DNA from: Mytilus californianus
Lineage: Eukaryota
NCBI RefSeq assembly: GCF_021869535.1
Contig: NW_026262581.1
Location: 17,670,001 to 17,734,000, forward strand
Length of the DNA: 64,000 nt
Direction of reading: 5' to 3'
Shown: one piece after another, positions 15,843-63,228 of the stretch
Position numbering within the stretch: position 1 is the first letter of the stretch
Layout: every line of letters starts with the position of its first letter
The notes under the pieces: model-generated
The model's database searches: none
What the model was told of the DNA's origin: nothing
Seen by the model: only the letters and a program-made list of their open reading frames with translations
Made by a program: the position numbers and the translations under genes

Positions 15843-15987
15843 TTACAAAGAGACTTTTTGAAATTCTTGACGTCCTTCATAGGCATTATTTTCATAAGCT
15901 GCTGGGTCACTGAAATGTTCCTGATCATAGGAATTATTTTTCTTCACATTGTGTTCTCTTTGAACTAAATCCTCTCTCTTTCTGTGT
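15843..15987 (-). CDS. exon E38: terminal exon, cytoplasmic tail
   Basis: atttcag|(R)HRKREDLVQREHNVKKNNSYDQEHFSDPAAYENNAYEGRQEFQKVSL*, phase-2 compatible with E37. Confidence 0.85.
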
Positions 15988-18900: not shown

Positions 18901-21900
18901 TATTTTGCTAAATTTGTTGAATTTTAAAAACAGTTACCATCCACCAGATTGCAAAGGATGTAGATATAAGCAATGTTTGTTTTGATTACCTGGGCATCCA
19001 GATTCACATTTATTGTTTTTTTCTCAATAACTACAATCTTTGAAAACATTCAAATGCAATACAGTCATCCCTTAAGTAAAAATCATGCAACTACATGCTA
19101 AAATCATATGTTAATGAAATGCTCTACACATTAGATATCAAATATATTTCAATGATAAATGGTTTTTACTTGACATTTGTAACTTTTCAACTTCATATTT
19201 CTTTTCCAACCTACAAGAAAATGTAACCTCTTGATTCTAGTATAATATAAAATCTTGGTTTTCTTATAGTTTGTGCTTTTAATTTTTTTTGGCACTATTT
19301 GAAATTGTCTTTGAATCCTAGAACAATAAATTCTGTCTCCAATTCCAATTATATCATGAAGTTGCATATATTGTCCAATTTCTAAGTGCAGACTGGAACA
19401 GTATTCAACAGACTATATAAAAAAAAGCTCTACTTTGCAAAGCTTAATCTGATTGATAAATCTTTATACTTAAACGAAAGAGGCTCACAAGAGCCTGAAT
19501 CGCTCTCATTTTGATGTTTATTTTCTCCTCTATTGCAATCAGTTATGTTTGCTTATGAATCAAATCCCAGGACACAATTTTTAACCCAGTTACCCTTGGG
19601 AAAATTCAGCTTAAGTTTTGTAACATTTAATTGGCCCAGTAGTTTCAGAGATGAATATTTTTTAAAATGCCAATGATGACCAAGTGATGGCAAAATCTCA
19701 CATAGCCTTTTAGACCAGGTCTATTATATTTTTCAAAATTACTAGGTGCAATTTGCAATGTACTTTGTGCAACATGATATCTAACTTAGCAATCCAGATA
19801 TAGTAAATATTATTTAGACTGAACATAGTGCTTAAAAACATTGTGTTGTAAAAATATCATCACTGTGCTTTAATGGGGTACATAATTTTTTATGTACTTC
19901 TTATTACAATTATAGAACAATGGCAATAAAAATGCAGCACAGATTTAATTTCACCACAAGCAAAATGAAAGTACTTGACCTTTGACTTTTGACTTTCAGA
20001 CAGACATTTAAAGACTACTTTAACGTTTCAATTTCAGTTATTTCCATTATATGTTGTTTAAGAAATAGTGATGCGCATTACTTCAAATATCTTTTTTTTC
20101 TATTTGAACGTTGAAAGGTAAAGATCTAGCATTCAGATCCTTCATGAAATAAATTTTGATTCTGTGCTGAGCTTTTCTTTCTTTGCCATTGGTTTATTAA
20201 AATAGAGGGATATACATACAAATGTCCCGCCATTTAAACATAGTGATTATGAGTGTTAACAGATAAAGCAGTGATTGCAAAAATGGGAATAGGAGCATTA
20301 TATATATATATAGACTATCTTCAAACCTTCACTTACTCAAAGGTATAAAATATAAAGTGATGTAATACTGACCTTCTCTTATGTATAACACAACAGATTA
20401 TAGTAATAACTATTATGGCAGCTAATACTCCTAAAACTATAGCTAGGGGTAATGTCCATTTCTGTAAAGAAATTTATAAAAAAAAAACCAATGTAAAGTG
20501 TCCATTGGATATCTGATCCTTCTGCCTATCTGTAGAGAACAATTAATTCCTGTAATTCAGGGGGTTGCGGTTGGTTTATGTCTAATATTTATTTTTCATT
20601 TTTGTTTTATCATAAATCAGTTCATCAGTTTTCATGTTTGAATTGTTTTACATTTTGTCATTTTGGTCCTTTTATAGCTAACTATATGGTACCAGTTTTG
20701 CTCCTTGTTGAAAGCTGTACAATGACCTATAATCATCCATTTCATTTGGTATATGGTGGAGAGTTCGTCTCATTGGCATCTGTTTGCTTTTACATTTTAA
20801 ACATACAGTAAACGAAACATTAATGAGATCTCCTAACTAGCTTCAAATTATATTATTTACTTCATCCATTATGTAATGTATACACAATTTTGGGCCATTT
20901 TGATGAATAAAAATGAAGAATATTAACTAGAGATGTGACACCGATAGATTTGTATTTTTTAAATAAATGAATTCTAGTTTTTCTAATTACCTTATAAATG
21001 GTCGATTTTACCTTTCCGATATTTGATATCTGAAGTTGAATAAATATAAATTATTTTCTTCATGGATAAATGGGATACCCAGAAGTGCTTACCTTATCAT
21101 CATCATCCTCTTTTGGTGCTCTAGAATGTAAAGTTTTACCAGCTGTTGCTAGAGACTGTTGTAGTTGTGCTGTAGAGGGAGAGTTTAGGTCTTCTACATT
21201 GTCACCCTTAAGTCCTACTCTATAATTTACTTCAGAGACTGGATTTCTACAATCGTAAATCAATAACTGCATGAAAACATGCTACCATAAAATAAAATGA
21301 CTCTCAAGAAAAATGTAAAGACAACAATGGATAATAATCAGGAAAACTTTAATCTTCTTTTTTAAGATTATGAAGTTATCCATTTTGTTATCAGAATTTA
21401 ACTTTTAAGAGTTGCTAAACTAAGAAAGCAGATAAGGTGGTTTGCTGGATTATTTTCTCAGTTGTAAGCAATTCCTTACCCATCTTTGTCTTTAGCTTTA
21501 TTGTTAATACCAGTGACAGTCACATCTAAGTCTGGTTTGGTTACATCTGTAAGGAGAAGAGAAAAGTATAGAGAAACATTTATTTTTATGTAAGTCTCAA
21601 TAAAAGTTTTCAATAGTCATTTGTTTTTTAAAAAGTAATATATCATAAAAATTAATTGCATATTTTTAATGAAAACATATCAAATTTAAAACTAAAAGAT
21701 CTGTGAGCTTAACTCTGCTCACAATCATATTCCTGCTCCCCATTTATACATTTATTGCAAAGTCTATGCTTTGCTGTGTAAAACTGCACAAGAGTGCACA
21801 TGCTGAAATGTCTCGCCTTCTTTACTAACCATTGATTTTATGTTGATAGTCCTAAATACAAAGCTTTACTACAAGTAACACATAAACTTAACATGATCCA

Positions 21901-24900
21901 AGAAAACGAGGTCAAGGTCAGATAAACTAAACGAGAAATACATGTACACCTTACAATCATTCAATAAACCAAACATAGTTGACCTATTGCTTATTGTTTC
22001 TAAGAAACAGTATTAAACAAGAAAACTTACCATTGACCAATGAACCATGAAAATGAGGTCAAGGTCAGATGAACCATGCCAGACAGACATGTACACCTTA
22101 CAATCAATTTAGGCATTAAATATAGTTGACCTATTGCTTATAGTATCTAAGAAACAAACTTAACCATGAAAACTTAACATTGACCAATGAACCATGAAAA
22201 TGAGGTCAAGGTCAGATGATACCTGCCTGACAGACATATACACCTTACAATCCTTCCATACATCAAATAGGGTTGATCTATTGCTTATAGTTGAAGAAAA
22301 ACAGACCAAAACACAAAAACTTAACACTGAGAAATGAACTGTGAAAATGAGGTGAAGGTCAAATAAAAACTGTGAGACTGACATGTACATCATAAAATAT
22401 TTCCATACACCATTTATAGTTGACCTATTGCATATAGTATTAGAAAAAAAGACCAAAACTCAAAAACTTAACTTTGACCACTGAACCATGAAAATGAGGT
22501 CAAGGTCAGATGACACCTACCAGTTGGACATGTACACCTTACAATCATTCCATATACCAAATATAGTAGACCTACTGCTTATAGTATCTGATATATGGAC
22601 TTGACCACGAAAGCTTAACCTTGTTCACTGATCCATGAAATGAGGTCGAGGTCATATGAAAATTGTCTGACGGGCATGAGGACCTTGCAAGGTACACACA
22701 TACTAAATATAGTTATCCTATTACTCATAATAAGAAAGAAATTAACATTACAAAAAATGTTGACTTTTTTTCCAAGTAGTCACTGAACCATGAAAATGAG
22801 GTCAAGGACAATGGACATATGACAGACGGAAACTTTGTAACAAGGCATCTATATACAAAGTATGAAGCATCCAGGTCTTCTAGCTTCTAAAATATAAAGC
22901 TTTTAAGAAGTTAGCTAACGCCGCTGACGCCGGATCACTATCCCTATGTCAAGCTTTCTGCGATAAAAGTCGCAGGCTCGACAAAAAACCAGTCAAATAG
23001 GAAAACTGAATAGAAGATGCCCAATGGCATTTGTAATACAGGTTCAATATTCCAAAACGATTGTATTGCCTGTACAAGTCCGAAAATATAAATTATATTT
23101 CAAGTCTGGTTGTGCCAAGCCCGAAATAATGTAGGTTTGCCATTTAAACATAATACAGAAAAAAAATTGAAGAATATGCAATCTTTTTAACCTGACATTT
23201 TGCCAGCCAAGCGTTTCCGGTCATACAAGTGACATGATGAATTAGTACTACAAAAAAAGGCCTACTTTTATCCCCTCATTACAATCAAGGTTAATTAGTT
23301 GTCTGACAGTTGAAATTTACCTGTTTAGGCAACACGTATCTGTCTCAGGTCCCTGTTTTACCTTTGTCAAGCCAACATCCATTATTAGGATAATTTGCTT
23401 TTTAAAAACAAAAGTAAACTTTCTGACAGCGTGATTTTGCATGAATAAATAGTCTAAAGCAGATGTTATTAAGCATTTTGAATGATGCACTGTCAACGTA
23501 ACAGTTTACCTCAGAACATCAAATTTACATCAAAAGTCTAAAGTTTAATATCATTTTTGTCAATCATTGTTATGATACCCAAATTATTACCATGATTGCC
23601 TTTTGTAACTAAGTCTTACAGGATTAAAATCCAAATAAAAAAAAAATGTTCGGCTGGCTCAAATAGTTTTTGGAAGCCCTGTTGCAGAACCAAGATGTCT
23701 ACCCCTTTCGTCCGTATATTGCTATGAAAAACCTCTAAAAATCTTATGGACTGATAAATAAAATAGATGAAATATTCAGTTGGATACTAAAGATTCTGTA
23801 AAATTTGCGTTGAAAATCCAGTCAAGGAACAATTAGACAATCAATCAACTGAACACGTCAATAACTATATAATACTGTGTCAATATGTGGGAGGATAAAA
23901 AAAAACATTTAGTAACAAATTCCAGCAAGGCCTTTAGTAATTTAAAAATTCTATTGAACCAAAAAGTTGTCTTTTAAAATATTTACCAGGATTTTCTTTG
24001 ACAAATGCATCTTTGATGGCCTCTGCAATTTTTGGTTTATCTGCATTCTGTGTTTGACCGTCCAGTTGTAGAGATCCTGCCAGTTTGGGTTTACATAGAC
24101 AAGGTTCCGATCCTGCCTGTTTTAATGGTGTTTTTATGCGATTGTTACTTGGTATATTCAAAAATAATGATTGTGGTTCTTCATCTTCAACTGCCACTGT
24201 ATACTCCATAGGAGTTACTTCCCTTCTGTAAAGTTAAAAAATTCTTATTTAGTTGTCAGTTTTTTTCATCAAATGCTTCAGACAGTAGAATCATACCTAA
24301 TAAGTCTCCTGTCACACATAAGTTACTGAAATTCTGGATTAAGTCAAACTGAGAATAAGACAGATACAAAGGAAAGAATCTGAGAAAAACTGATTTCTGA
24401 ATTACAAAAAACATGAATACTGTTGTGATTCATTTATTTTTGTGGATTGAGGAAAAATTGAATTTTTGTGGATACTTGATTTCGAGATATTTCTGCATAC
24501 AAGCTTATAGAAAATTTGTACCTTGTTGAACATTTAAATTAGTGGATCACCTTTACCCACAAAATCAACAAAAATTGGTATCCAATGAATAATAATGAAT
24601 CAACAGTACATGTACATATATATATGGTAAATGTTAGAAAACCCTTGACTTGTTCTAGATATGTATGTTAGCTTGAAGTTACACTGTAAGACAACATAAT
24701 GGGGTCATATTCTCAAATCTACAGAACATGAGGAAAGGCCCTAAAATCCTTAGTCATGTCCTGACATTATGAATGCTGTATGGCACTAAAGCACTTATTA
24801 TATTCATTGTTATGTATTTCAAGTTAATCTAAATTATATGACTGGTATGTCTTGTGTAATCAAATGGGATAGTATTTATGGTTTTTGTCAAAATTCAAAC

Positions 24901-51900: not shown

Positions 51901-54900
51901 ACATGCAATATAAAACATCTTCTTTTTTTCCCTTATATGTACATAAAATGGAGAGTTGTCTCATTGGCACTCATACCACATCTTCTTATATCTACATAAA
52001 GATTCCCAATAAGAAAACAACAAACACCATCATAAACACTGTCTGATATTAGTGAATGCAACATAACAAAATCCTTTAAATTGTAGAAAGCTTATCTATT
52101 ATTGGTATATGATCAAAAAATGTTTAGCAAAAAGATTCTTACCTTTACAAGTAGTTGCTTTTAGCTCTGCCTGTATGGTATTCAGGGCATCAAAATTGCC
52201 CACAGTGAATACATTTTTGTCATCAGAGGCAATAACTTTCAACTCATTTTCTTTAATTCCTTTACCAATACCAATAGCAAACACTTGAATGCCAGCCTGA
52301 TGAAGTTTACTTGCTTCCACTTTGGTTTTATTAAAATCCCTTGATTTGCCATCAGTCATGACTATAACAACGTTAGCTGCATTATCACGATCACCCGCAG
52401 ATTTTGTAAATGAATGATTACCCACATATTGCAATGCAAGATCAGTGAAGGTACCACCAGAGTTATATGAAATTTTTCTAATAGCTGCTACTAAATCCAT
52501 CTTTAACAAGTGCTGATTCATATTAAACTTGTTAAAAACAGTTTTAGAGAATGTGGTTACGCCAATCTGAATATTGTCAGGTCCAATTGTAAAAGATTCT
52601 GCAAATTTTGCTACAAAATCTTTCTGTTTCTCAAAATTTGCACTTCCAACACTTCCTGATGCATCTAAAAGAAACTGTATATCTGCTGGAACCTCATTAC
52701 AAACTGAAACAAATACAATTTCATTCGTAAATACAAATGTTGATATTTTAGACAAGTCATTAGCTGATTTCATTATTATTTTTTGTAACATTTAAAACGT
52801 TTAACAAACAAATATTATTTGACTTAATTATAAAGGCTAAAGTTTAAAACAACACAACAGTTTTGCAAAGGGTTTGTAGTTGAGTATTGAAACATGACGA
52901 AACACCATTTAATATTTATGGTACATCAACAGAACCATATTTAAGTGTGATTTTGTAAACGATAGATGTAAACTCTTCAAAAAATATAGTTATATGCTGT
53001 AATTTATGTACAGACATTTTGCCATAGTGAATTCAGGTATTTCTATGAAGTGGTAAATCTTCATGGAAATTAAATTTCAATATTTTTAGGGCCCAGCGTG
53101 TTTGCAAGGATTACTTTTTCACATTTTTATTGTCCCAGATTCTGATTGCCCTTTAAAATCAAATATATGAGAAGAGATTGCACAACAGTGCAATTTAAAT
53201 ATTTTATTTTCTGAAATAGTGAAAGTATGCATTTGTAATCCACATTATAATACATATAGTAACTTTGTATGTGATATTTAGACATCTTATTATTTTTTTT
53301 TTAAATCTGCACTCTGCATAAGCTTTATAAAATTAATGGATACAAAATAGGTTTTGAATTCACCTGTTTTTTCTTCAATTAAATGCAATTTTTCCTCCAC
53401 CATTTGTTTCAGCAACAAACTAATTTTCTTGGTAGCATCTGTTCCAAATCTATGATTGACAATCACAGAAGACGTCCATTGATATGGTAAAAATGAATTG
53501 TCAACCTGATCTACTTTGTTTAGCACTCTATAGATTCCTCTTGGTCCTGTGACACCATGGAAAACTGTGGTGTTTAATCTGACAGATGTCCTGGAATCTA
53601 CAACTTTTCCTTCTTTCTTCACAAAGTAGACTAATCTCCACACAGAATGTCTGCAAAAAACAGAGTAATTTTCTTTACAAATTTAAAATCTCAGTGAAAT
53701 ATGGAAAAATATAAAAAATAATCAAAATCAATGAATGTTTCGTATGAGGTGCTGACCAAGTGTTGTTACTTTGTAGCTGATCCATCATCCAAGATTGCCG
53801 CCAGAGGGGGACTTCGTTTAACATAGGACCCTATGGACAATACATACAAATGTCTTCTTTTTAGAGAACAACTGAATGGAATGAAACCAAACATGGCATG
53901 AATGTTCCTTATGAGGTGCTGACCAAGTGTTGTTACTTTGCAGCCGATCCATCATCCAAGATGGCCGCCAGCAGGGGACTTAGTTTAACAAAGGACCCTA
54001 TGGGAAAAACATACAAATGTCTTCTTTTAGTGAACCACTGAATGGAATGAAACCAAAAATCGCATAAATGTTCCTATGAGGTGCTGACCAAGTGTTGTTA
54101 CTTTGTAGCCGATCCATCATCCAAGATGGCCGCCAGCGGGGGACTTAGTTTAACATAGGACCCTATGGGAAAAACATACAAATGTCTTCTTTTAAGAGAA
54201 CCACTGAATGGAATGAAACCAAACATGGCATGAATGTTACTATTGAGGTGCTGACCAAGTGGTGCTACTTTGTAGCAAATCATTCAACCAAGATGGCTGC
54301 CAACAAGGGACTTAGTTTAACAAAGGACCCTATGGGAAATATATACAAATGTCTTCTTCTAGAAAACCGCTTAATGGATTGAAACCAAACGTGGTATGAA
54401 TGTTTCTTTTGAGGTGCTGACCAAGTGTTGTTACTTTGTAGCTGATTTGTCATTGTCCTTATAAAGTCATTTTCTACAATTTCAATGAATTTATTGGTAA
54501 TTTCTGTAAACTTTACAAAAGTCTTCTGCTTTTTATGAAATTACAGGGCCAAATATTAAACCAAATTTGGCCTCAATCATTATTAGGGTATCTGTTAATA
54601 TAAAAACTATGTTTGGTTTCATTCCATTCAGTGGTTCTATAGAAGAAGTTAATAAAATGCTCCGCAGGGCGCAGCTTGATACGACCGCAGAGGTCGAACC
54701 CTGAAAAGTTGGGGCAAGTATGGACACAACATTCAAGCTTGATACAGCTCTGAATTTGGATTGTGATTAAATATTTGACACAGCATAGGTTTCTGACACA
54801 GAATGAATGTGGTCTAAGAACTTAAAAATTTTAAATTGGACATTCACCTATTATGGTCTAATATCCAAAATCTAAATACATGGTTAGATTCAGCATATCA

Positions 54901-57900
54901 AAGAACCCCAAGAATTCAATTTTTGATGAAATCAAACAAAGTTTACTTTTGGACCCTTTTGACCTCAATGTGGACAAAGTTGATAACGGGGCCCAAAAAT
55001 CAAAAATCTAAATACATGGTTAAATTCAGCATATCAAAGAACCCCATATATTCAATTTTTGTTGAAATCAAACAAAGTTTAATTTTGGATCCCGATTTGG
55101 ACCAACTTGAAAACTGGGCCCATAATCAAAAATCTAAATACATGTTTAGATTCAGCATATCAAAGAACCCTAAAAATTCAATTTTTGTTAAAATCAAACT
55201 AAGTTTAATTTTGGACCCTTTGGACCTTAATGTAGACCAATTTGAAAACGGAACCAAAAATTAAGAATCTAAATACACGGTTAGATTCGGCATATCAAAG
55301 AACCCCAATAATTCAATTTTTGATGAAATCAAACAAAGTTAAATTTTGGACCCTTTGGACCTCAATGTGGACCAATTTAAAAACGGGGCCCAAAATCCAA
55401 AAACTTAATACACGGTTAGATTCAGCATATTAAAGAACCCCAAGAATTCAAGAATAAAACCCCACTGAAATTGATCAAGAAATAAGCAATTTATACGAAG
55501 TATCTTCTTTTGCACAATACTGTGCAATTGAATATTTCTTGCTATTGCGCAATACTGTACAATTGACAATTTCTTGTTACTGCGCAATATTGTGCTATTG
55601 GATATTTCTTGCTATTGCGCAATACTGTGCAATTGAAGATTTCTTGCTATTGCGCAATACTGTGCAATTGAAGATTTCTTGCTATTGTGCAATACTGTGC
55701 AATTGAAAATTTCTTGCTATTGCACAATACTTATTATATAATAATTTACACATCCTGTTTGGTGTGTATCTCCTACCATATCATTATTATTTGCTTTTAA
55801 ATATTAATCAGAAATAACCAACTTAAAATGGAAAATTTTAAAAGAAAAAAAAAAGGAAAAAAAGAAAAAAAAAGTTAAAAAAAATCCCCCCCCCCCAAAT
55901 TTTTTGAACCCCCTTATGATTCATCACCCCCAAACTCAATCCCAGCCTTCCCTTTGTGGTATGGTACCTTGCAGTACAATTTCAGAGAGTTCCATACACT
56001 TGAACACAAGTTATTGTCTGGAATCTAGAAAAATGCTTATTTTTGGACCCTTTTTGACCCCCAATTCCTAAACGTTTCCGGCAATTACCCCCAAACTCAA
56101 TTCCAGCTTTCCCTTTGTGATATGAAACCTTGTAGTACAATTTCAGAAATATCCAAACACTTACACACAAGTTATTGTCATGAAACTAGAAAAATGCTTG
56201 TTTTTTGCCCCTTTTTTGGCCCCTAATTCCTAAAATTTTGAGGCAATTACCCCCAAAATCAATTACAGCCTTTCCTTTGTGATATGGAACCTTGTGGTAC
56301 AATGTCAGAGAGATCCATACACTTACACACAAGTTATTGTCTGGAAGTTACAAAAATGCTTATTTTTGGCCCCTAATTCCTTAACTGTTGGTACCATAAC
56401 CCCCAAAATCAATCCCAACCTTCCTTTCGTGGTATTGAACCTTATGGTTAAATTTCATGGAGATCCATTCACTTAAACTAAAGTTAGAGTGCGAAAACCA
56501 ATATGTCTTCGGACGACGACGACGCCAACGTCATACCAATATACGACCAAAAAATTTTTAATTTTTGCGGTCGTATAAAAATATAAAAAGTTCACGACAA
56601 TGGCGGATGACCGACGACGGACGCCTAGTGGTGAGAAAAGCTCACTTGGCCCTTTGGGCCAGGTGAGCTAAAAAAGGGCTTCTGTTCAAGTTTCCTAAGA
56701 TTCTATTACAAGAAAAATACAGAAAAACAAAGAAAAATACTTTCAAAATTTTTCTCTGGATATTGTCTTTTGATTATGAAAAAGCCTTTTTCCAAGTTTC
56801 ATAAAATTCCATGAAGATTGACATAGTAATTGGCGTCTACAAAAACCTTATCCACAGACTAAATAAACCTTAATGTTAACAACTCAAGACAATGGAATTG
56901 AGGATCACTTATTGCATTCTGTCTCACTTCACAATTTTTGTTGCTGACAAGACTAAAAAGACAAGAAATATATTGTGGGTCCAGTTTGGTCTAGGGCTAG
57001 TAATACTCCTCCCTCAATTTCCGTTTAAAATATTTAAACAACAGTCCTTTCTAAATTTTCTTTTACAAACCATAACTGCTCATGTTCTCAAGTATTAGAA
57101 GGCCTCTTTTTCATACTACATTTATAAGTTATATAATCTCTAAAATGTCTTACCCATCAACTTTATCAACCAGTTCTTCTTGTGTCATATGGTCAATATT
57201 AACATTCATTCCTGAAATTTATACAGATTATACATCATATCAATCAGATTTCTTTTCTAACCTTAGCTTTGTTAATGTACTCAGCCGACTATGCAGTATG
57301 GGTTTTGCTCATTGTTGAAGGCTGTACAGCGACCTATAGTTGTTAATATCTATGTCATCTGTCTAACTGGCAATCATGCCACATCTTATTTTCATATCTT
57401 ATTCACTTAAAAGTTTTATTTCTGTATTTAATCATGAAATGGAGCTGTCATACATCAAAACTAATACTCTCTCATCTTAATCTTATTTTTATTTAAATCA
57501 TCAAAAGGTTATCTGCAGTTTTTGGATACCTAGCTGACCCTTTTGCAAAGAAATGGTTTTTTTTTTGCATATTATCACAAAATCTAATACTATTTCATAG
57601 AGAGTACAGAAAATGAAATTAAGATGTGAATTATTATATACTATCATTATAAATATTGTTATTTAAATAAAATCTATTTATTAATGCAAAACTTATTAGA
57701 GTAGTTTGTGTGTAAAATGAAGGTCAAGGGGGTTGAATTCTTATGTAGACCTTTGTCACTAAACCTGATGCATCATCTGACAAAAGACCCTTCCTCTATA
57801 ATTTGAAGTTGCTTATATATCTTGACCTTAACACAGTACTTTACTTAAGCCATTCATGGGTAAAATGAAGCTCAAGGTGACTTAATTTTAGTATAGACCT

Positions 57901-60900
57901 TTTTCACTATGCATGATGTATCAGCTGACAAAAAGAGCATTCTCTATGTTTCGTTTGGTTAATGAATCTGGTCCTCAACCCAAACTTAACTAGGACAGAT
58001 GAATGAATGAACAGACAGAACTGAGCAAAGGATAATTAAGTTAAACAATAAAATAAACATTGTATGTAAATATAAACAGAAATATACTTTTTTTGTTAGT
58101 TATAAGATTATTTTGCTCTGATCAATTGACTTGATATATCCAGCTATTACATATTAAAGGCATATTCCATTCAAAATCATAATCCTTTACTGAATTTGAA
58201 TGTCATTGTCTTTTACCTTTGATTTTTTCTTTTACTCATAAAATAATGAATATTTTAGCAGGTAAAATTCACAAATGACTATGACACAGATAATTTACCT
58301 CTTGCTTTCCAGGCTTGAATAATTCTTTTCTTGAACTCCTCATATGAATTATGTGTAACTTTACTAGATAGATACACAGAAAAGTGACTGTTGTATTCAA
58401 TATTAGATGTAGATGGTTTCACTAATACCAGCGAGGCCCCAATGGTGGAGTTCACATTCTTGAAAGCTGCCACCAGAGATGTGTGTGAAAGCTCAGGCAA
58501 AGAAATATTTACAGGTACGCTGTTGTTCATGTTTATAACGTACTCCCAACTCCATGTTTTCTCTCTAAAAAATAAATCTACTGTAAAAGCAGAAATTTTC
58601 GTGGAGGATTAGGATTTAATTTCGTTTATTTCGTGGAAAGAATATATCCACGAAATTAAAACCCCCTCGAAAATTTAACCTAAATATAAGATCACTTCCA
58701 AATTCTGGAAACCACGAAATTAAATCCCTATGAAATCTTATATAGAGACAAAACCACGAAATTTTAACCCAACGAAAATTAATGTTTCTACAGTATATCA
58801 AAATTCATATTCGAGAACACCTAAATATTGTAAAATAATGCAACATTATTAAACAATGGTAATTTATGATTACAAAATTTGTCTTGTCTTGGTATTAACT
58901 TAATAAATATTACAAAAGAATTAAAATAGTTATCTAAGAATAACCTTTATTTTGTAAGACAATGATATACTCCCCTCAATGCATCCTTTCATCAAGAAAT
59001 TTGATTATAGGTCACTTATACACAAGATATTATCTCTTAAACTTGAGTGGAGTTATCTGCATAAAACTCAAATGGAATTCTTAAATGATATCAGATCTTA
59101 GATGTAAAATATAATTATCAGTAAAGCATGATAAAAATGTCAGATTGACTACTATTTGTCATATGCTCCCCTTGATTTATCTTTACAACAAGTTACATGA
59201 TTGTAAGTAACTACTGTGACTTGACTGTTAGTGTTGCTCTCCACCTATTGCATCTTATTCAAAATTTTGACCGAATTGCAATTTGTTTTATAAAACCAAA
59301 CTGTTCAACTGGTCAGAAATTTGAAAAAACTGCTGTAGACAACCACAGTCAAGTTGTGAAAGTGCAAGGTGATAAATTAAAGCATACTTACAATCCTATA
59401 AGACTTTAATTCCACTTCAATGTTATTATGAAAAATTCGTAAGGGTTCCGCGGAACCCAGTGTCTCGCCTACTTTTGCTGTTAATCGCAGGCTCAACAAA
59501 AATGAGGAAAAAAATAAATAAAAATATTCCTCTCTATACTATCTTTTGATTGTTAGTAGCTTCTGTCCAAGTTTGGTAAAAATCCAGGATAGTTTATGAA
59601 TCTAATAAATGTTTTAAAAACTTAAACTGCAGACTGTATGTAATGTTAACTGGAAGAAAAACTAAGTCCATTTATAAATAAAAATGGTAGAAATCCAGGA
59701 TAGTTTAAGAAAGTTATTAAAATTTCAAAAACTTCAACCACAGAGTGAATGTAATGTTTCTTGGCAGAAAAACTAAGTCCATTTATAAGTAAAATACGGA
59801 AAAAATGGATTTTTTTTTTTACAAAATTTACTTCTGGATACTATCTTATGATCATAAGCAAGCTTCTTTCCAAGTTTGGTAGAAATCCAGGATAGTTTAA
59901 GAAAGTTATTAAAATTTCAAAAACTTTAACCACAGAGTGAATGTAATGTTTCTTGGCAGAAAAACTAAGTCCATTTATAAGTAAAATAGGGAAAAAATGG
60001 AATTTTTTTTTTACAAAATTTACTTTTGAATATTATCTTATGATCATAAACAAGCTTAGTTTGGACATTTTTATAGCAATTCAAAATTTCTAGCCATCAC
60101 CTTTAGCATGACAATAACAATAAAAATTTCTATACAAACTGTTAGACTGATTTTTCATATTAACATCGAAGTGGAATTAAAGTCTTATAGGATTGTAAGT
60201 ATGCTTTATTTTATCACCTTGCACTTTCACGACTTGACTGGTTTTCTACAGCAGTTTGTTCAAATTTCTGACCAGTTGAACAGTTTGGTTTTATAAAACA
60301 AATTGCAATTTGGCAAGAATTTTGAATAAGTTGCAATAGGTGGAGAGCAACACTAACAGTCAAGTCACAGTAAGTCAAATGCAAGAAAAAATCTACTGAA
60401 TTTGACCTTACTTTTCACTTATTTCCAGTCACTTACCCTGTTTCTGTTACCATAGGTCTCTGTCTGATGAATTTTATATCTATGTTATCTAGTCCCATCC
60501 CTGCAAAATTTCAACATAAATAGAGGTAGTAATTGATGCTGCTGCTCCATTAAAATATCATTCATTCAGTATAAAAAGACATTGGAATTTAAACAATCAG
60601 AACTAGAGTGTGACCAAGTGCATCAGCAATAATAAGCTAAGCTTTGAGTTAAAGTTGTTTATAAAGATTTCCTCATTAGAAAAAAAATATTTTGCATTAA
60701 TTGGTCTCATACAGCATACTTCTCCAAAGCTCCATGTGGTGTTTAAAGCACAAGAGGAACTTATGCATCTTTCATAGGTCATGAGTGTATTAATGTAATA
60801 TACATGCACTATAGTTTTGAATGAATATATTTCTGCTTTAATTCCTTAAAATGTCCAAGGTATTCAGATTATTAAAGGAGAATTTCAAGAGTAAAAAAAA

Positions 60901-63228
60901 AAGAAGTTGTTACTAATGCAAATAAATGTTACCTTTCAATTTAGCAGTCCATGAAGTTTTCAATTTTTTGGCAACCGTCTTGAAGTCAGTTGTGGCAACA
61001 AATGATTTAAAGTATAAATGATGAAGACTACTGGTAGATATATAACTTTTCAGGTCGACTGTACTATAGGGGACACCAGTCGCAGAAGTAAAGTTGAGGT
61101 GTGAAGACAAATGGGAATTAGTTAGACTTAAAGTAGTCCACTTGTCAGTTTTGGTTCCATTTACAGATAAAGTATACAGCAGTTTCCAGGATGATTTCCT
61201 ACAAAAGATTATTTAATCTACTTTAATGGCAAAACATTTTTTCATTAGAGTCAGTATTGATAATTAAGAATACTCAAAATCTGTCTTAGTAACAGATCAT
61301 TTCAGTTGTTAAATAATTTGTACTACAAAAATATAGATCTTCTAAAAATATTATAGCAACAGGTAGGTAATTTTAAATTGATTTTTCAAATCCATAGATG
61401 TTAGAAAATATAAATAATAATTATCTCTGTTTACAAATAAATGTTATTAACCATCACAAAACATTGAAAATTGCTTTCAATAAAAGTAAACTCTAGGGCA
61501 AGATGTCTGAATTCTGTTTGTCAAAATGATAAAGGCTATTAAGATTTTCATTGGCTTTTTTTATGTGTGTGTGTGTGCTAGGAAACTACATGAGAAGTCC
61601 TGATCATTTTAAACATGGTATAATATTTGTAGATTTTCGGAATTCATTCTGTAGATAATAAATCCAAAGTTCCATTTTTTTTAACACCCAATATGCGAGC
61701 AGCCTCTGTGGTCAAGTGGTACCACACATGTCTGTATTTGAGGTTGTTTATTCCCTTTTCAACCAAAACTACAAATCTTAATCCTATTTCTTACCCTGTT
61801 GTTTTGTCTACCAGTTCTTCTTGTCCTGTAATGTCTACTGTTACTGTGGAGGGATCAACCTCTGTAAAATAGCATTTTACAACAGTTTAAAGTACTTAAA
61901 ATAAAAAATAGTTCAATTATAATTTTTTTTTTATGTTCTTTTCTGCAATATGTCTTAATGACAAGAATATTCTTTTAAACTGCCTTCCCTTCTATCACCG
62001 GAGTTCATCCTGTTTTGAGTTGGTGTTTTTTCTGTGTACTTTATCAGACTGATTTTTATGTTTTTATCTTTTTGCATATGGCCATGGCTTCTTTGATATG
62101 ATTTCTGGTTATATCCTTTGAATCTTATTATTTTTATTACGACACCATATCTTTTTAATAAATAGTTGATAATAAATTTATATCAAAATCTAACACAAAA
62201 ATGTCAGATGACTGAATCTCAAGGTGAAATACCGGAGTAAAATCCTTAACACTTATTACTAAAAATAAACCTATGAATTTCTTTTAACTTCTCTGAAAAT
62301 TCTTACATAAAATCATTAATACTCTATGATCAAAATGCAAGCTGAGTACAAAGCGACAAATGGATTGTACACATCATACTAACCAGGGAGAACTGTCGCT
62401 GTAAAAAATTCTGAACCACTTTTACTTAAAAAAGACCTTTTGTTGCAAGTTTCTATTCAAAATGTATGAGATTCATTCTCTATAATAGTTTTTCATTGAA
62501 ATGCAATCTGAGTGCAACAAGACAGACAGATTTGAGACATTATACTAACCAGGGTGTTCTGTACACCAGGCAGTAATGACAGCACCTTTCATTTTATCAT
62601 GATCAGTTGTTGATACTTTGTGGTTTAAGTTGAATGAGAAGATGTGAGTAGCATCTATTGTGTGTCTCCCAGTCTTCAATTTATAGGACTTCCCATTGGT
62701 AGATGTAAAATTTAACATTGATTCAAACTTTGTTGTGTTAAGTTCTGGTGGGTTTACAGTTTTACCATCAACTTTAAGAATGAAAGGGAGCCTCCAAGTT
62801 TTCTCTCTAAAAAATATACAAAAAAAATAATAATTTTCTTACAAATTTGACATTATATTTATGCACTTATTCAAAGCTTTTATTTTCTTTTCTTTTTCTT
62901 TCACCATTATATTGTCTGGATAAAACCACAATTGTTTAATAGTATTATAAGCTTAATAAAGCACAGCAGAATCATTTCCTTTTTAATACAACTTTTTGAA
63001 GTACAAAAAATAAAATAAAGGTAAATATCAATACACAATTAAACATCACTTCCTCAGGTAAACATCGCTTAACCTAGTTAAACATCACTTCCTCAGGTAA
63101 ACATCACTTAACCTAGTTAAACATCACTTCCTCAGGTAAACATCACTTAACCTAGTTAAACATCACTAACCCAGTTAAAGTATAATATTCCTTGGTTTTA
63201 TTTAATCCTTCAATATGAATTTTCTTTC
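15843..63228 (-). CDS. Giant type I membrane protein with >=18 tandem SEA-like (KIAA1549/UPF0606-like) repeats, an inserted vWA domain, furin site, TM helix and short cytoplasmic tail; 5' end outside window
   Basis: 38 GT-AG exons chain into one open frame of 6539 nt (~2178 aa) ending TAA at 15843-15845. Short (phase 1->2) and long (phase 2->1) exons alternate regularly. Recurrent motifs: W-x-L-x-Y-x-V-x-x-(N/D)G, F-x-V-Y...helix ending in W, and V-x-I...QEE-x-V...G. The gene model is seen in the sequence; the SEA-fold assignment is inference. Confidence 0.9.
16935..17597 (+). mobile_element. Helentron/HINE-like element nested in another dispersed repeat
   Basis: gaggct..aagagcctgtgtcgctcacc start, (gacg)n microsatellite, 3' hairpin gctcacttggccctttgggccaggtgagc plus A-run. 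Confidence 0.7.
20373..20461 (-). CDS. exon E37: transmembrane helix
   Basis: tttacag|KWTLPLAIVLGVLAAIIVITIICCVIHKR(R)|gtcagt; >20 hydrophobic residues followed by basic stop-transfer residues. Confidence 0.92.
21093..21246 (-). CDS. exon E36 (end of last repeat, juxtamembrane)
   Basis: NPVSEVNYRVGLKGDNVEDLNSPSTAQLQQSLATAGKTLHSRAPKEDDDDK|gtaagc, phase 2->0. Confidence 0.9.
21480..21546 (-). CDS. exon E35 (short)
   Basis: DVTKPDLDVTVTGINNKAKDKDG|gtaagg. Confidence 0.88.
21788..22988 (+). mobile_element. Helentron/HINE-like element, same family as 9605-12800
   Basis: acaagagtgcaca..gctgaaatgtctcgcc start, ~7 copies of the gaaccatgaaaatgaggtcaaggtcaga unit, A-rich end. Confidence 0.7.
23987..24225 (-). 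CDS. exon E34 (long repeat exon)
   Basis: REVTPMEYTVAVEDEEP...EPCLCKPKLAGSLQLDG...KIAEAIKDAFVKENP|gtaaa. Confidence 0.9.
24420..24606. mobile_element. TA-TSD MITE
   Basis: TA|CTGTTGTGATTCATT...AATGAATCAACAG|TA; related fragment near 12865-13030. Confidence 0.7.
25066..26118 (+). mobile_element. HINE-like element with internal ~170-bp tandem units
   Basis: Same termini and blocks as the 16935 copy; (gac)n microsatellite near the 3' end. Confidence 0.65.
26452..26548 (-). CDS. exon E33 (short, carries furin site)
   Basis: GLSSTSLLVRVKQQSRRQKRATQPSHKLVDGNG. Confidence 0.88.
27076..27293 (-). CDS. exon E32 (long repeat exon)
   Basis: NIVTKVRYIVSINDTDP...TQCGCS...HYVYSKTINSTRVRTAISTVWKDANK|gtaag. 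Confidence 0.88.
27856..27910 (-). CDS. exon E31 (short)
   Basis: DKPVVVKMIDTSIYVDVSW|gtaagt. Confidence 0.82.
28378..28616 (-). CDS. exon E30 (long repeat exon)
   Basis: VKIAKLYFKLEINNTT...KVYVLYLKGKVQNSDRLLSVLKLNWMSVAP|gtatg. Confidence 0.88.
29156..29222 (-). CDS. exon E29 (short)
   Basis: DQLKSIKTHILLKKDYVSSSNTS|gtgag. Confidence 0.82.
29593..29904 (-). CDS. exon E28 (fused short+long repeat exon)
   Basis: GYLVRVISTEPSVGDLGTHLTSVLYDAENKEGEAVTP...NMLNHAIANTTK|gtaag, phase 1->1. Confidence 0.88.
31062..31303 (-). CDS. exon E27 (long repeat exon)
   Basis: KSLTTFTFIVTADGNMLYPT...YSLCFKLVLQSQHIPINKTIIKTLLENAWNASNL. Confidence 0.88.
31549..31609 (-). CDS. exon E26 (short)
   Basis: AYSNVELSSVSRENTFEDLTG|gtaagt. 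Confidence 0.85.
31703..31804 (-). CDS. candidate symmetric cassette exon (34 codons) of the repeat gene
   Basis: ttcttag|GSSDRIFKPEGIDSERSDFTLQTLTCKEENSKPE|gtataa, open, phase 1->1, 93-nt intron to E26. Confidence 0.55.
32018..32583. mobile_element. Kolobok-like MITE
   Basis: TTAA|AGGAGTAGG...CCTACTCCT|TTAT with ~35-bp imperfect TIR; TTAA target with RR termini is the Kolobok signature. Confidence 0.7.
33004..33269 (-). CDS. exon E25 (long repeat exon)
   Basis: KTVWRYNYIVNVSGNILNAAE...LFQVHFFGIVPNDKKLSLMNHVKLYWENVT|gtatg. Confidence 0.88.
34259..34331 (-). CDS. exon E24 (short)
   Basis: AANVDDVKLVVFNEQKVVATVSNSS|gtagat. Confidence 0.8.
34451..34656. mobile_element. TA-TSD MITE
   Basis: TIR CTGTAAATTCAGAAATTATTGCG at both ends, TA flanks; second copy at 42903-43096. 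Confidence 0.85.
35071..35342 (-). CDS. exon E23 (long repeat exon)
   Basis: NTLWELSYHITTTDGTIVNS...AFKVMINRRIYNVDKEKFHSVVKQTLAKRVK. Confidence 0.88.
35372..36510 (+). mobile_element. HINE-like element with an internal ~490-bp tandem duplication
   Basis: aacaagaggctctcaagagcctgaatcgctcacc start; ~35410-35900 repeated at ~35900-36420; terminal hairpin gctcacatggggcccttcgggccccggtgagc. Confidence 0.7.
38773..39702. mobile_element. Tc1/mariner-pogo-type MITE, 930 bp
   Basis: TIR CAGTTGAACCTCGTTGTGTCGAA / TTCGACACAACGAGGTTCGACTG, TA on both sides, internal ttcgactcatccgag subterminal repeats. Confidence 0.85.
40430..40715 (-). pseudogene. Degenerate THAP zinc-finger-like relic
   Basis: MDTAESYKKKGRDISCAVNNCTNNRRK...LCELYKLFRLHT, then frameshifted LLWQTNV and SSSASVCIEY blocks resembling THAP W and VCSxHF motifs. 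Confidence 0.4.
41016..41073 (-). CDS. exon E22 (short)
   Basis: GTKVKSVQVLKQEETFYSTS|gtaatg. Confidence 0.85.
41558..41838 (-). CDS. exon E21 (long repeat exon)
   Basis: LSLWRLWYKITSNNVTVSP...LFSIHFAQRIADSDLNKVGDKLTVLWKKKIGT; an alternative in-frame donor lies 6 nt upstream (exon end 41564). Confidence 0.85.
42521..42578 (-). CDS. exon E20 (short)
   Basis: DLKQTKTEIVHQEEMVSSTR|gtatg. Confidence 0.85.
42903..43096. mobile_element. TA-TSD MITE, same family as 34451-34656
   Basis: ctataaattcagaaattattgcgagg...atttctgaatttacag, TA flanks. Confidence 0.8.
43416..43648 (-). CDS. exon E19 (long repeat exon)
   Basis: SKKKVSKLSYYLTVDGKAIHPD...LFHVDFTLPVLRTDIANVEKALKTAWAVFRS|gtaag. Confidence 0.88.
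44036..44105 (-). CDS. exon E18 (short)
   Basis: VFTDSKLNVSVMIGSQDWYLYKSL|gtaagt. Confidence 0.82.
44146..44830 (+). mobile_element. HINE-like element with internal tandem units
   Basis: caatgtcccc subterminal motif, three copies of acatgagagcgctaac units, (gacg)n, tcccc..gggga hairpin; boundaries approximate. Confidence 0.55.
45203..45459 (-). CDS. exon E17 (long repeat exon)
   Basis: KYMMLSIFVKKEKTYVDSR...AFSVYLSKALKRTEVTSVINDIKKTWKEK. Confidence 0.88.
45789..46538. repeat. 45-bp minisatellite, ~16 copies
   Basis: Unit aaaacttaatgttca(t/c)tactaccaatggttgatagctataattgt, near-perfect, no spacers. Confidence 0.95.
46616..46676 (-). CDS. exon E16 (short)
   Basis: GNNIVVHVDIPEQTQVLSGNK|gtaagt. 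Confidence 0.82.
47127..47282. mobile_element. Short GC-rich MITE
   Basis: CAGTGACGGATTCAG...CTGGATCCGCCTATG flanked by a GTACATG direct repeat; relatives near 30408-30475 and 40280-40425. Confidence 0.75.
47299..47555 (-). CDS. exon E15 (long repeat exon)
   Basis: KTVWKVDYYLKKDGSLIDPS...YKIFINREVRVKDIDKMKSVLVKWWKSSNNI|gtaag. Confidence 0.88.
47944..48013 (-). CDS. exon E14 (short)
   Basis: GSLTYNNTEVTVNRYTKYIDIAAK|gtaag. Confidence 0.82.
48244..48518 (-). CDS. exon E13 (long repeat exon)
   Basis: KSYWRVMYFLKKNHTVVES...AFSFYLSKEIGYKQRTKFEQDIKASWIKKMK. Confidence 0.88.
48739..49573. mobile_element. hAT-like MITE with perfect 8-bp TSD
   Basis: ATCAAAAC|CAGGGCTTCCAAA...TTTGGAAGCCTTG|ATCAAAAC; related inverted copy near 23280-23681. 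Confidence 0.85.
49808..49883 (-). CDS. exon E12 (short)
   Basis: EYSLCGCLSIANITKESIEEFVDKNG|gtaagt. Confidence 0.82.
49886..50172 (+). mobile_element. Short HINE-like element abutting the E12 splice acceptor
   Basis: aaaacaagtgaatctgtgagc start, (gacg/gaca)n tract, taccccc..ggggtat terminal hairpin. Confidence 0.6.
50631..50902 (-). CDS. exon E11 (long repeat exon)
   Basis: KRVWKLVYFVKVNGQYVPAT...RFSIFFTGKVSETSLTAIQTALLETWNSSSK. Confidence 0.9.
51752..51842 (-). CDS. exon E10 (short)
   Basis: VFVVNKTVTEQTVTNVSVEVKRQEEYITSTG|gt. Confidence 0.88.
52143..52703 (-). CDS. exon E9: von Willebrand factor A domain
   Basis: 561 nt, symmetric phase 1->1; CNEVPADIQFLLDASGSVG...GGTFTDLAL...VIVMTDGKS...IASDDKNVFTVGNFDAL...TTCK; MIDAS DxSxS, T and D present. 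Confidence 0.95.
53364..53650 (-). CDS. exon E8 (long repeat exon preceding vWA)
   Basis: HSVWRLVYFVKKEGKVVDSR...ISLLLKQMVEEKLHLIEEKT|gtgaat. Confidence 0.88.
53735..56672. mobile_element. Cluster of nested HINE-like/dispersed repeats
   Basis: ~180-bp tandem units (gaggtgctgaccaagtgttgttacttt), ~130-bp units (ttagattcagcatatcaaagaaccc), (gac)n tracts, terminal gctcac..gtgagc hairpin at 56640-56669. Confidence 0.65.
55512..55730. repeat. 35-bp tandem repeat, ~6 copies
   Basis: Unit tattgcgcaatactgtgcaattgaagatttcttgc. Confidence 0.85.
57154..57211 (-). CDS. exon E7 (short)
   Basis: GMNVNIDHMTQEELVDKVDG|gtaag. Confidence 0.88.
58299..58564 (-). CDS. exon E6 (long repeat exon)
   Basis: EKTWSWEYVINMNNSVPV...HFSVYLSSKVTHNSYEEFKKRIIQAWKAR. 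Confidence 0.88.
58581..58793. mobile_element. TA-TSD MITE
   Basis: TA|CTGTAAAAGC...TTTCTACAG|TA with internal ccacgaaatt repeats. Confidence 0.75.
59214..60370. mobile_element. Foldback-type element with ~210-bp TIRs and a nested HINE-like insertion
   Basis: 59212-59425 is the reverse complement of 60161-60372; TA on both sides; 59432-60062 holds ~180-bp tandem units. Confidence 0.8.
60437..60500 (-). CDS. exon E5 (short)
   Basis: GMGLDNIDIKFIRQRPMVTETG|gtaagt. Confidence 0.85.
60933..61198 (-). CDS. exon E4 (long repeat exon)
   Basis: KSSWKLLYTLSVNGTK...LHHLYFKSFVATTDFKTVAKKLKTSWTAKLK. Confidence 0.88.
61795..61861 (-). CDS. exon E3 (short)
   Basis: EVDPSTVTVDITGQEELVDKTTG|gtaag. Confidence 0.88.
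62550..62806 (-). CDS. exon E2 (long repeat exon)
   Basis: EKTWRLPFILKVDGKTVNPPEL...HIFSFNLNHKVSTTDHDKMKGAVITAWCTEHP, phase 2->1. Confidence 0.88.
63043..63170. repeat. 39-bp dimeric tandem repeat, ~3 copies
   Basis: aaacatcacttcctcaggt + aaacatcacttaacctagtt, abutting the E1 donor. Confidence 0.85.
63171..63228 (-). CDS. SEA-like repeat gene exon E1 (short)
   Basis: ttttcag|xKKIHIEGLNKTKEYYTLTG|gttagt, phase 1->2. Confidence 0.75.

Follow-up and report, generated by a model that had tools for sequence, protein, structure and literature searches.

A gene of Mytilus californianus for a giant predicted membrane protein: a chain of divergent SEA-like domains with a von Willebrand factor A exon inside one of them

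The 64,000-nucleotide stretch of Mytilus californianus DNA analyzed here (contig NW_026262581.1, positions 17,670,001 to 17,734,000; "the window") is AT-rich, with about 31% G+C, and its minus strand carries a long series of stop-free pieces that have a repeated pattern in common. Do these pieces belong to one gene, and what kind of protein would it encode? Our answer is that they probably belong to one gene for a type I membrane glycoprotein of ~3,800 residues, whose C-terminal 2,236 residues are encoded on the minus strand from 64000 to 15843 and which, as a chain of SEA-like domains, would work by the mechanism proposed below.

An earlier note on this DNA had joined 38 minus-strand GT-AG exons in frame into ~2178 residues. 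We searched for AG- and GT-bounded, phase-compatible, stop-free pieces independently of that exon list and arrived at the same exon count and length. All 38 exons lie between AG and GT; their 6,536 nt join into 2,178 codons with no stop, against 177 and 216 stops in the other two frames, and the gene ends with a stop codon at 15845-15843. Two types of exon alternate: long ones of 218-312 nt with intron phases 2/1, and short ones of 55-97 nt with phases 1/2. The long-exon acceptor leaves one base of the split codon, and the long-exon donor adds one base. The exon that encodes a von Willebrand factor A (vWA) domain, 561 nt long, has phases 1/1. In placing the start at 63228, the earlier note stopped one exon short. 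An additional long-type exon at 64000-63828, cut by the window edge, has the donor AAG/GTATAT (slash, exon border) in phase 1, matches Dreissena P0008 by tblastn and completes the first SEA-like domain (positions 6-113 of profile A3, described below; independent E value [i-E] 2e-20). Its addition brings the window to 39 exons and 2,236 residues. The gene continues upstream past the window edge at 64000; judging by orthology, the whole protein would have ~3,800 residues, and the window would hold about its C-terminal 60% to two thirds. The exons are listed here; exons 2 to 8, 10 to 27 and 29 to 32 were placed by AG/GT borders and phase, and other evidence is given in brackets.

Exon 0, 63828..64000, minus strand, long type, cut by the window edge (donor AAG/GTATAT, phase 1; tblastn to Dreissena P0008; A3 profile)
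Exon 1, 63171..63228, minus strand, short type, strand 2 of a domain (splice-bounded open frame)
Exon 2, 62550..62806, minus strand, long type (exon alignment)
Exon 3, 61795..61861, minus strand, short
Exon 4, 60933..61198, minus strand, long, 43% identical to its Potamilus counterpart (alignment)
Exon 5, 60437..60500, minus strand, short
Exon 6, 58299..58564, minus strand, long
Exon 7, 57154..57211, minus strand, short
Exon 8, 53364..53650, minus strand, long; its 3' half gives the vWA-split domain its strand 1 and helix 1, with the helix end ~7 residues longer and devoid of the usual Trp (A3 profile)
Exon 9, 52143..52703, minus strand, the whole vWA domain, 561 nt, phase 1-1 (PF00092; acceptor TTTCAG/, donor AAG/GTAAGA)
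Exon 10, 51752..51842, minus strand, short, 5'-extended, strand 2 of the split domain (A3 profile)
Exon 11, 50631..50902, minus strand, long; dN/dS 0.12 against contig L001
Exon 12, 49808..49883, minus strand, short, CxC motif
Exon 13, 48244..48518, minus strand, long
Exon 14, 47944..48013, minus strand, short
Exon 15, 47299..47555, minus strand, long
Exon 16, 46616..46676, minus strand, short
Exon 17, 45203..45459, minus strand, long
Exon 18, 44036..44105, minus strand, short
Exon 19, 43416..43648, minus strand, long
Exon 20, 42521..42578, minus strand, short
Exon 21, 41558..41838, minus strand, long
Exon 22, 41016..41073, minus strand, short, with a 5.7-kb intron after it (Potamilus alignment)
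Exon 23, 35071..35342, minus strand, long
Exon 24, 34259..34331, minus strand, short
Exon 25, 33004..33269, minus strand, long
Exon 26, 31549..31609, minus strand, short
Exon 27, 31062..31303, minus strand, long
Exon 28, 29593..29904, minus strand, fused short and long (312 nt; phase-1 acceptor, phase-1 donor)
Exon 29, 29156..29222, minus strand, short
Exon 30, 28378..28616, minus strand, long
Exon 31, 27856..27910, minus strand, short
Exon 32, 27076..27293, minus strand, long, CxC motif
Exon 33, 26452..26548, minus strand, strand 2 and loop of the penultimate domain; furin-type site R-R-Q-K-R/A at 26504-26490
Exon 34, 23987..24225, minus strand, long, CxC motif; best-conserved ectodomain exon, 47% identical to Potamilus
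Exon 35, 21480..21546, minus strand, short, strand 2 of the last domain (Potamilus alignment)
Exon 36, 21093..21246, minus strand, remainder of the last SEA-like domain and an acidic stalk
Exon 37, 20373..20461, minus strand, transmembrane helix (20455-20381) and basic stop-transfer residues, 52% identical to Potamilus
Exon 38, 15843..15987, minus strand, cytoplasmic tail and stop codon, 49% identical to Potamilus

The ratio of nonsynonymous to synonymous substitution rates (dN/dS) was 0.12 for the single exon tested (50902-50631, compared with contig L001 of a related species), which argues that the locus is one intact gene under selection, and we take the gene to be real and intact. Each exon, the short ones included, has a counterpart in the alignment with the Potamilus protein introduced below, which supports the junctions indirectly. 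Intron and exon identities to one related contig, 87.5% and 90.1%, respectively, were uninformative as a footprint, and Rfam models gave no match in the window. The exon at 29593-29904 has a phase-1 acceptor where phase 2 would be expected, pointing to the loss of one intron of the periodic pattern. An apparent lack of one long and one short exon in the interval 41015-35343 was dismissed, as the colinear Potamilus alignment shows a single 5.7-kb intron there with nothing left out.

Is the repeated pattern a chain of domains? Fourteen long exons align with one another at 15-31% identity. A profile made from this alignment found 161 proteins among 1.84 billion representative sequences; the top three, of 3,590, 3,634 and 3,394 residues, were matched in 24, 23 and 11 stretches, respectively. 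From 51 single-domain windows, taken solely from the repeats of other species, we then built profile A3, which replaced a two-domain alignment of overlapping windows (A2) that slid out of register. Against the 38-exon protein, A3 gave 19 matches, all below an i-E of 0.01 and the strongest reaching 8e-30, corresponding to 17 whole domains, a partial one and one split in two halves. With the extra exon added, the window contains 19 complete ~110-residue domains, in agreement with the at least 18 divergent repeats of that length claimed previously. A hand count on the exon alignment and translations likewise returned the Trp at the end of a helix in 13 of the 17 long exons. Each domain is distributed over three exons: it starts in the 3' half of a long exon, passes through a short one and ends in the 5' half of the long exon that comes next. 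The envelopes of neighboring domains touch or overlap; there are therefore no linkers between them. The window part of the protein also contains 43 N-glycosylation sequons, only 13 cysteines including three CxC pairs, one furin-type site and one transmembrane helix. The CxC pairs are at residues 753/755, 1880/1882 and 1990/1992 of the spliced protein (exons 49883-49808, 27293-27076 and 24225-23987); the last two flank the furin site, and the last one is kept in every aligned orthologue. In this otherwise cysteine-poor ectodomain, the pairs might serve for a disulfide with a partner or for the binding of metal.

Over their C-terminal ~2,000 residues, the Potamilus, Patella and Saccostrea proteins align colinearly with the window protein, repeat for repeat, the sole large gap being the ~150-200 residues of its vWA. 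The full-length relatives are the following.

Potamilus streckersoni KAK3591160, 3,590 residues; residues 1565-3590 aligned, 32.6% identity over 1,921 columns
Patella caerulea KAK6195844, 3,634 residues, automatically named 'Delta-like protein'; residues 1616-3632 aligned, 27.5% identity
Saccostrea echinata LOC133190156 (P0204), 3,593 residues; residues 1515-3593 aligned, 33.8% identity
Owenia fusiformis CAH1774350, 3,394 residues, from an annelid; full-length alignment with Patella and Potamilus only, C-terminal module matching the window

The family spans molluscs and an annelid. In Tegillarca, Mya and Dreissena, the orthologue is annotated in pieces. The array comprises 27 domains in Potamilus, 27 in Patella and 25 in Saccostrea, the last number being a count above the length cut-off. 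By our own reading of the tables, the positional orthologue is the best match for 12 of 17 window domains in Potamilus and for 7 of 17 in Patella, and the repeats within the protein are on average only 17.7% identical to one another. This retention of positional orthology, together with the divergence of the paralogous repeats, argues that the array is ancient and fixed in number rather than a recent amplification of the mucin type.

The heads of the orthologues, in the N-terminal part, consist of a signal peptide, an MNNL/C2 domain, a DSL domain, an EGF-like module and a ~230-residue Ser/Thr/Pro-rich stretch. DSL scored 36-50 bits and MNNL 26 bits, above the curated Pfam cut-offs, with both present in Saccostrea. 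The phmmer program linked the head to DLL1 (4xbm, 8e-9), to Serrate (7alt, over residues 24-214) and to structures of Jagged as well. A signal peptide and the Ser/Thr/Pro-rich stretch were found in Patella, and the latter also in the N-terminally partial Potamilus model. The cysteine framework of the MNNL-DSL region is invariant from Owenia to the molluscs. One or two EGF-like modules precede the mucin-like stretch in the mollusc orthologues; Owenia has more EGF repeats. The mussel protein would have the same kind of head, with signal peptide, MNNL/C2-DSL, EGF-like module and mucin stretch.

The earlier note had also stated that no characterized protein of this kind was recognized. Orthologues do exist, but in every source they are labeled hypothetical, uncharacterized or, by rule, 'Delta-like protein', and surveys of Notch ligands set such DSL proteins aside. 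One survey in lophotrochozoans excluded DSL proteins with extra domains (PMC5356439), and the architecture was not described in a second one (PMC8166818). Our literature search found no paper on this family of SEA-like repeat proteins. Because its orthologues already sit unnamed in public databases, the sequence of the gene is not new, but we found no earlier description of this kind of protein.

What fold does the repeat adopt? Using AlphaFold2 with A3 as the alignment, we modeled residues 2071-2189 of the Potamilus protein, which are 41% identical to their positional orthologue in the window, the domain of exons 11-13. The model (predicted local distance difference test [pLDDT] 88.8, predicted template modeling score [pTM] 0.82) has the order beta-alpha-beta-beta-alpha(-beta), with a short beta4. 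VIA-align was run exhaustively and on Foldseek candidates. It matched the model to the membrane-adjacent domain (MAD) MAD12 of protocadherin-15 (PCDH15; Z 9.3, 112 residues), the ferredoxin-like domain of Nup54 (Z 8.0), MAD28 of cadherin-23 (CDH23; Z 7.8-7.9), CELSR1 (Z 7.5), the SEA domain of MUC16 (Z 5.1-5.7), the dystrophin-glycoprotein complex (Z 5.6) and TMPRSS6 (Z 5.0). The top 13 rows of the exhaustive run (Z >= 5) comprised cadherin MADs, Nup54 and SEA-type or SEA-containing surface proteins, with generic ferredoxin folds ranking lower. In the AlphaFold DB, Foldseek found a mosquito cadherin (template modeling [TM] score 0.64), protocadherin-15 (0.62) and KIAA1549L (0.50), and MUC13 was listed too. 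The best match in the ESM Atlas was an arthropod cluster (TM score 0.65), 43% of whose members carry PF12877, the KIAA1549 model; KIAA0319 (0.58) and mucin-13 (0.56) were also matched. Pei and Grishin, in 2017, reportedly grouped such matching proteins as divergent SEA domains.

Identity to the structural matches is 3-14%. A language-model feature search of the ESM Atlas gave nothing above chance (best score 0.77), and neither PF01390 nor any other relevant Pfam model matched the seven non-vWA segments of the window that were scanned. Two features of SEA domains were nevertheless found. The beta1-alpha1-beta2-beta3-alpha2-beta4 order is present in both AlphaFold2 models (pLDDT 88.8 and, for the C-terminal pair described below, 88.6), whose structural matches also include IA-2 domains, and the domains are extracellular, near the membrane and next to a Ser/Thr/Pro-rich region: the transmembrane helix follows right after the last domain, and the Patella and Potamilus orthologues have the ~230-residue stretch. 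The models thus support assignment of the repeat to the SEA/membrane-adjacent-domain ferredoxin-like fold. The proposal of a beta-alpha-beta-beta-alpha-beta SEA/ferredoxin-like fold is supported by this order and by the structural searches; the fold is not Ig or FN3.

The vWA domain occupies exon 9. Pfam PF00092 matched it with an E value of 8.4e-46 over profile positions 1-173 of 174 (52683-52168), and the residues of the metal ion-dependent adhesion site (MIDAS), D-A-S-G-S, G-G-T and T-D-G, are present, with the D-x-S-x-S motif at 52662-52648. The exon interrupts the A3 profile at position 41, where helix 1 ends and before strand 2, which places the vWA inside a domain and not between domains. 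At the junctions with it, the flanking exons 8 and 10 are longer by about 7-10 residues, and the helix-capping Trp is lost. None of the four orthologues (Potamilus, Patella, Owenia, Saccostrea) has a vWA. Its nearest relatives are the many single-exon open reading frames (ORFs) of bivalve contigs that bear collagen- or matrilin-like names and are 60-65% identical to it; the searches found no copy above 65%, although a related species is 87-90% identical in a neighboring exon. The vWA therefore looks like a lineage-specific exon gain, seen in only this copy of the family. Single-exon vWA ORFs with 45-65% identity (P0151-P0200) are numerous in bivalves, with several sharing a contig, and this abundance points to a large pool of phase 1-1 vWA exons ready for shuffling.

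At the other end of the chain, the last ~290 residues are the best-conserved part of the protein (phmmer E values of 4e-72 to 1e-18 for six proteins). A word-indexed homologue search with this C-terminal module returned only the query itself. AlphaFold2 modeled the last two Potamilus domains as two SEA-like domains (pLDDT 88.6, pTM 0.80), each of which matches MAD, Nup54, GPR126-SEA, MUC16-SEA and phogrin ectodomains; the GPR126 SEA domain matches the last one at Z 5.7. The sole segment of this model with a pLDDT < 50 is the strand2-strand3 loop of the penultimate domain, and it contains the furin site. At this site, the window protein has R-R-Q-K-R/A, Potamilus RMRR, Patella RRRR, Dreissena RHRR and Saccostrea RQKR. 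SEA domains are cut in that loop, autoproteolytically or by furin as in Notch and GPR126 (bioRxiv 10.1101/2025.08.18.670743), furin processing in a SEA-like domain has been shown experimentally for KIAA1549 (PMC13570299), and juxtamembrane SEA-like domains are force-gated proteolytic switches (PMC6586460).

As anticipated from the DNA, a transmembrane helix (residues 2104-2128, hydropathy window maximum 3.34) precedes a short cytoplasmic tail, which we measured at 50 residues. The helix, the two-domain juxtamembrane module and the tail motif are common to all four orthologues. The mussel tail contains Y-D-Q-E-H-F-S-D (15929-15906) and Y-E-N-N-A-Y (15896-15879), both on the minus strand. Of these, Y-D-x-E-H-F-S is kept from the annelid to the molluscs (tails of P0001, P0002, P0003, P0010, P0143 and P0204), and aromatic-x-N-x-x-Y is kept in the molluscs, with a true NPxY in Potamilus and Saccostrea. 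The conserved motifs look like docking sites for partners.

These features suggest the following mechanism. The SEA-like chain would form a stiff, glycosylated stalk on the order of 100 nm. At a long distance from the membrane, this stalk would carry the head, the mucin stretch and, in the mussel, the metal-dependent binding site of the vWA. In the Golgi, furin would cut the penultimate domain, whose beta-sheet would keep the two chains together as it does in Notch S1, GPR126 and KIAA1549. A pull on the head or the vWA might then part the chains or bare the last domain to sheddases, creating a force-sensitive release point, while Y-D-x-E-H-F-S and the aromatic-x-N-x-x-Y/NPxY-type motif of the tail could couple the remaining stub to endocytic adaptors with phosphotyrosine-binding domains. 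As the earlier note proposed, the protein may serve as a rod in the glycocalyx, in adhesion or in mechanosensing.

How does this architecture compare with known systems? MUC16, MUC1 and MUC13 are, like this protein, type I membrane glycoproteins with a membrane-adjacent SEA fold and a mucin-like stretch, and MUC16 also has many SEA domains in tandem; the fold matches stand at Z 5.1-5.7 for MUC16 and a TM score of 0.56 for mucin-13. In contrast to MUC16, the domains here abut without Pro/Thr/Ser (PTS) linkers, and the copies diverged anciently (18% identity) instead of being recently amplified. Unlike in the SEA mucins, there is no G/SVVV motif and no Pfam SEA match, and cleavage is predicted to be by furin. 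The best solved matches, protocadherin-15 MAD12, cadherin-23 MAD28 and CELSR1, cover ~100-112 residues and are ferredoxin-like and membrane-adjacent, but those proteins have a single such domain after their cadherin repeats, whereas the present family has ~27 copies and no cadherin repeats.

KIAA1549 and KIAA1549L (UPF0606, PF12877), which rank among the best shape matches, are type I membrane proteins whose N-terminal region is heavily O-glycosylated. Before the transmembrane helix they have three SEA-like domains, one of which bears a furin site in a loop (PMC13570299; bioRxiv 10.1101/2025.08.18.670743). Our family differs in having ~27 domains instead of 3 and a 50-residue tail instead of a very large cytoplasmic domain; conversely, KIAA1549 lacks the DSL head and the vWA. 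PF12877 gave no match at E <= 1 in the C-terminal ~390 residues of three orthologues or in the window exons. As this model does not match and the tail is very short, the protein is not a member of the KIAA1549 family. The resemblance to KIAA1549 pointed out in the earlier note thus holds for the fold (TM scores of 0.50 for KIAA1549L and 0.65 for the Atlas cluster) but not for family membership.

The orthologue heads are homologous to those of DLL1, Serrate and Jagged, which are type I membrane proteins too. Relative to Delta, Serrate and Jagged, the mollusc members have 1-2 EGF-like modules, a mucin-like stretch and ~27 SEA-like domains, and the tail lacks the ATEV motif. A canonical Delta has nine or more EGF repeats after the DSL domain (PMC5356439), a number that the mollusc orthologues do not reach. 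As for the receptor side, the Notch negative regulatory region (NRR; S1 site in its heterodimerization domain, HD) and the SEA domain of GPR126 resemble our protein in that a juxtamembrane SEA-like domain bears a furin site in its strand2-strand3 loop. Cleavage of Notch and GPR126 by furin yields a non-covalent heterodimer that responds to force (PMC6586460). In our protein, by contrast, there is no LNR or GAIN partner, and the domain that bears the site is the penultimate one, capped by another SEA-like domain.

Several observations weigh against the view of a furin-cleaved, force-sensitive SEA chain with a Notch-ligand head. The structural Z values of 8-9 barely exceed the range that the notes of the tool call common. 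With PF01390 or other relevant Pfam models, none of 51 orthologue domains (0/51) matched at E <= 1, and a profile search of PDB sequences gave chance-level matches only. The autoproteolysis motif G/S-[VI]-V-V, present in many SEA domains though not in all, does not occur at the beta2-beta3 turn or elsewhere in the protein; the turn reads G-x-[SK]-x-W, and GS-hydrophobic-hydrophobic strings are found only past beta3, inside an N-G-S sequon. The furin site is missing from the Owenia and Haliotis proteins and from the Mizuhopecten paralogue, which argues that cleavage is not universal in the family. The mollusc heads have far fewer EGF-like modules than canonical Notch ligands, and the mussel head, which lies outside the window, is assumed from the four full-length orthologues. 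The splice junctions are predicted, those around the vWA exon in particular, and we infer the stiffness and length of the rod, its shedding and endocytosis and any binding to Notch.

Other explanations can be set against this evidence. An artefact, be it a decaying pseudogene or two or more neighboring genes wrongly chained, is highly improbable: although the orthologue is broken up in several public annotations (Tegillarca, Mya, Dreissena), the 39 phase-consistent exons give 2,236 codons without a stop, the protein is colinear with three full-length orthologues, and the dN/dS is 0.12. We also regard it as unlikely that the repeat is an independent ferredoxin-like invention, convergent on a common alpha/beta sandwich. 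No sequence-level link to SEA was found, the identity to structural matches is 3-14%, and Z values of 5-9 lie where the tool warns of a possibly common arrangement, all in favor of convergence; however, the top 13 exhaustive rows are all MAD, Nup54 or SEA-type, with generic ferredoxin folds lower, and the context fits SEA in that the repeats are extracellular and membrane-adjacent, with a mucin-like stretch and a protease site in the strand2-strand3 loop.

Two further alternatives are possible, though we doubt both. The vWA exon might not be constitutive, being either a skipped cassette or a recently landed copy of one of the abundant bivalve vWA exons that is never spliced in. Without this 561-nt phase 1-1 exon, the frame would stay open and the SEA-like domain would be whole again, the exon is in 0/4 orthologues, its nearest relatives are scattered single-exon bivalve ORFs with 60-65% identity, and no closer copy was found despite the 87-90% identity of the neighboring exon in a related species. 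Conversely, its frame is intact, with a full-length Pfam match and the MIDAS residues, its splice sites are strong, the donor matching 8 of 9 consensus positions, and the lengthening of the flanking exons by about 7-10 residues with loss of the capping Trp looks like accommodation of an insert. The whole protein might instead be a passive spacer of the glycocalyx or matrix, a bulky mucin analogue that protects or lubricates epithelia, such as those of gill, mantle or foot, in which the DSL head is vestigial and furin serves only for constitutive shedding. This would agree with the 43 sequons of the window part, the Ser/Thr/Pro-rich stretch of the orthologues, the classical association of SEA with mucins (MUC16 and MUC13 being among the fold matches), the few EGF modules and the lack of the furin site in some members. 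It is at odds with the repeat-for-repeat orthology of a fixed set of 25-27 domains, which implies constraint on each domain and not on bulk alone, with the cysteine framework of MNNL-DSL, invariant from annelid to mollusc, and with the conservation of the tail motifs. We therefore favor the SEA-like chain with a force-sensitive release point.

The introns of the gene contain repeats of their own. An intronic 45-bp minisatellite at 45789-46492 (15.6 copies, 98% matches) yields spurious ORFs of 285 residues on the minus strand and 225 residues on the plus strand, both outside the gene model. Satellites with a period of about 135-167 bp lie in the larger introns (53731-54446, 54863-55451, 55926-56374, 21893-22660 and 33508-33986), and some of them give short repeated ORFs, e.g., with ...PPLAAILDDGSATK units. 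Just beyond the donor of exon 15, an intron run at 47222-47300 that would read as glycines on the minus strand and as prolines on the plus strand lengthens the raw ORFs on both strands; it is non-coding in the gene model.

The building blocks of this protein are known. What is new is a repeat family without a curated model, the number of its domains and their age, as well as the combination of a DSL head, a mucin stretch, a SEA-like rod and a furin switch, with, in the mussel, a vWA within a domain. We may go further and view the family, as a speculation to which we give only a slim chance, as a hitherto unrecognized class of long-reach Notch-type ligand of molluscs and annelids. Its C2-DSL head would be displayed ~100 nm out on a fixed 27-domain rod above a ligand-side, furin-cleaved, force-sensitive SEA switch that mirrors that of the Notch receptor, with an NPxY-type tail, and the mussel would add a metal-dependent vWA adhesion site in the middle of the rod.

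In practical terms, public annotations split or truncate the gene in several molluscs. The vWA exon offers a clean, datable case of exon shuffling, into a loop within a domain. In Notch, dystroglycan, adhesion G protein-coupled receptors, tip-link cadherins and KIAA1549, the force-gated cleavage modules are membrane-adjacent SEA-like domains, and here is a protein made almost wholly of them, with ~27 consecutive copies that bivalves and a limpet have conserved one by one. The family joins three topics that are usually separate: a head of the Delta/Serrate type, a mucin stretch and a SEA switch that furin would cleave. The protein would provide a natural test of whether SEA-like domains can build a long load-bearing rod, and of whether the head of a Notch ligand can act at long range or under a mechanical fuse on the ligand side.

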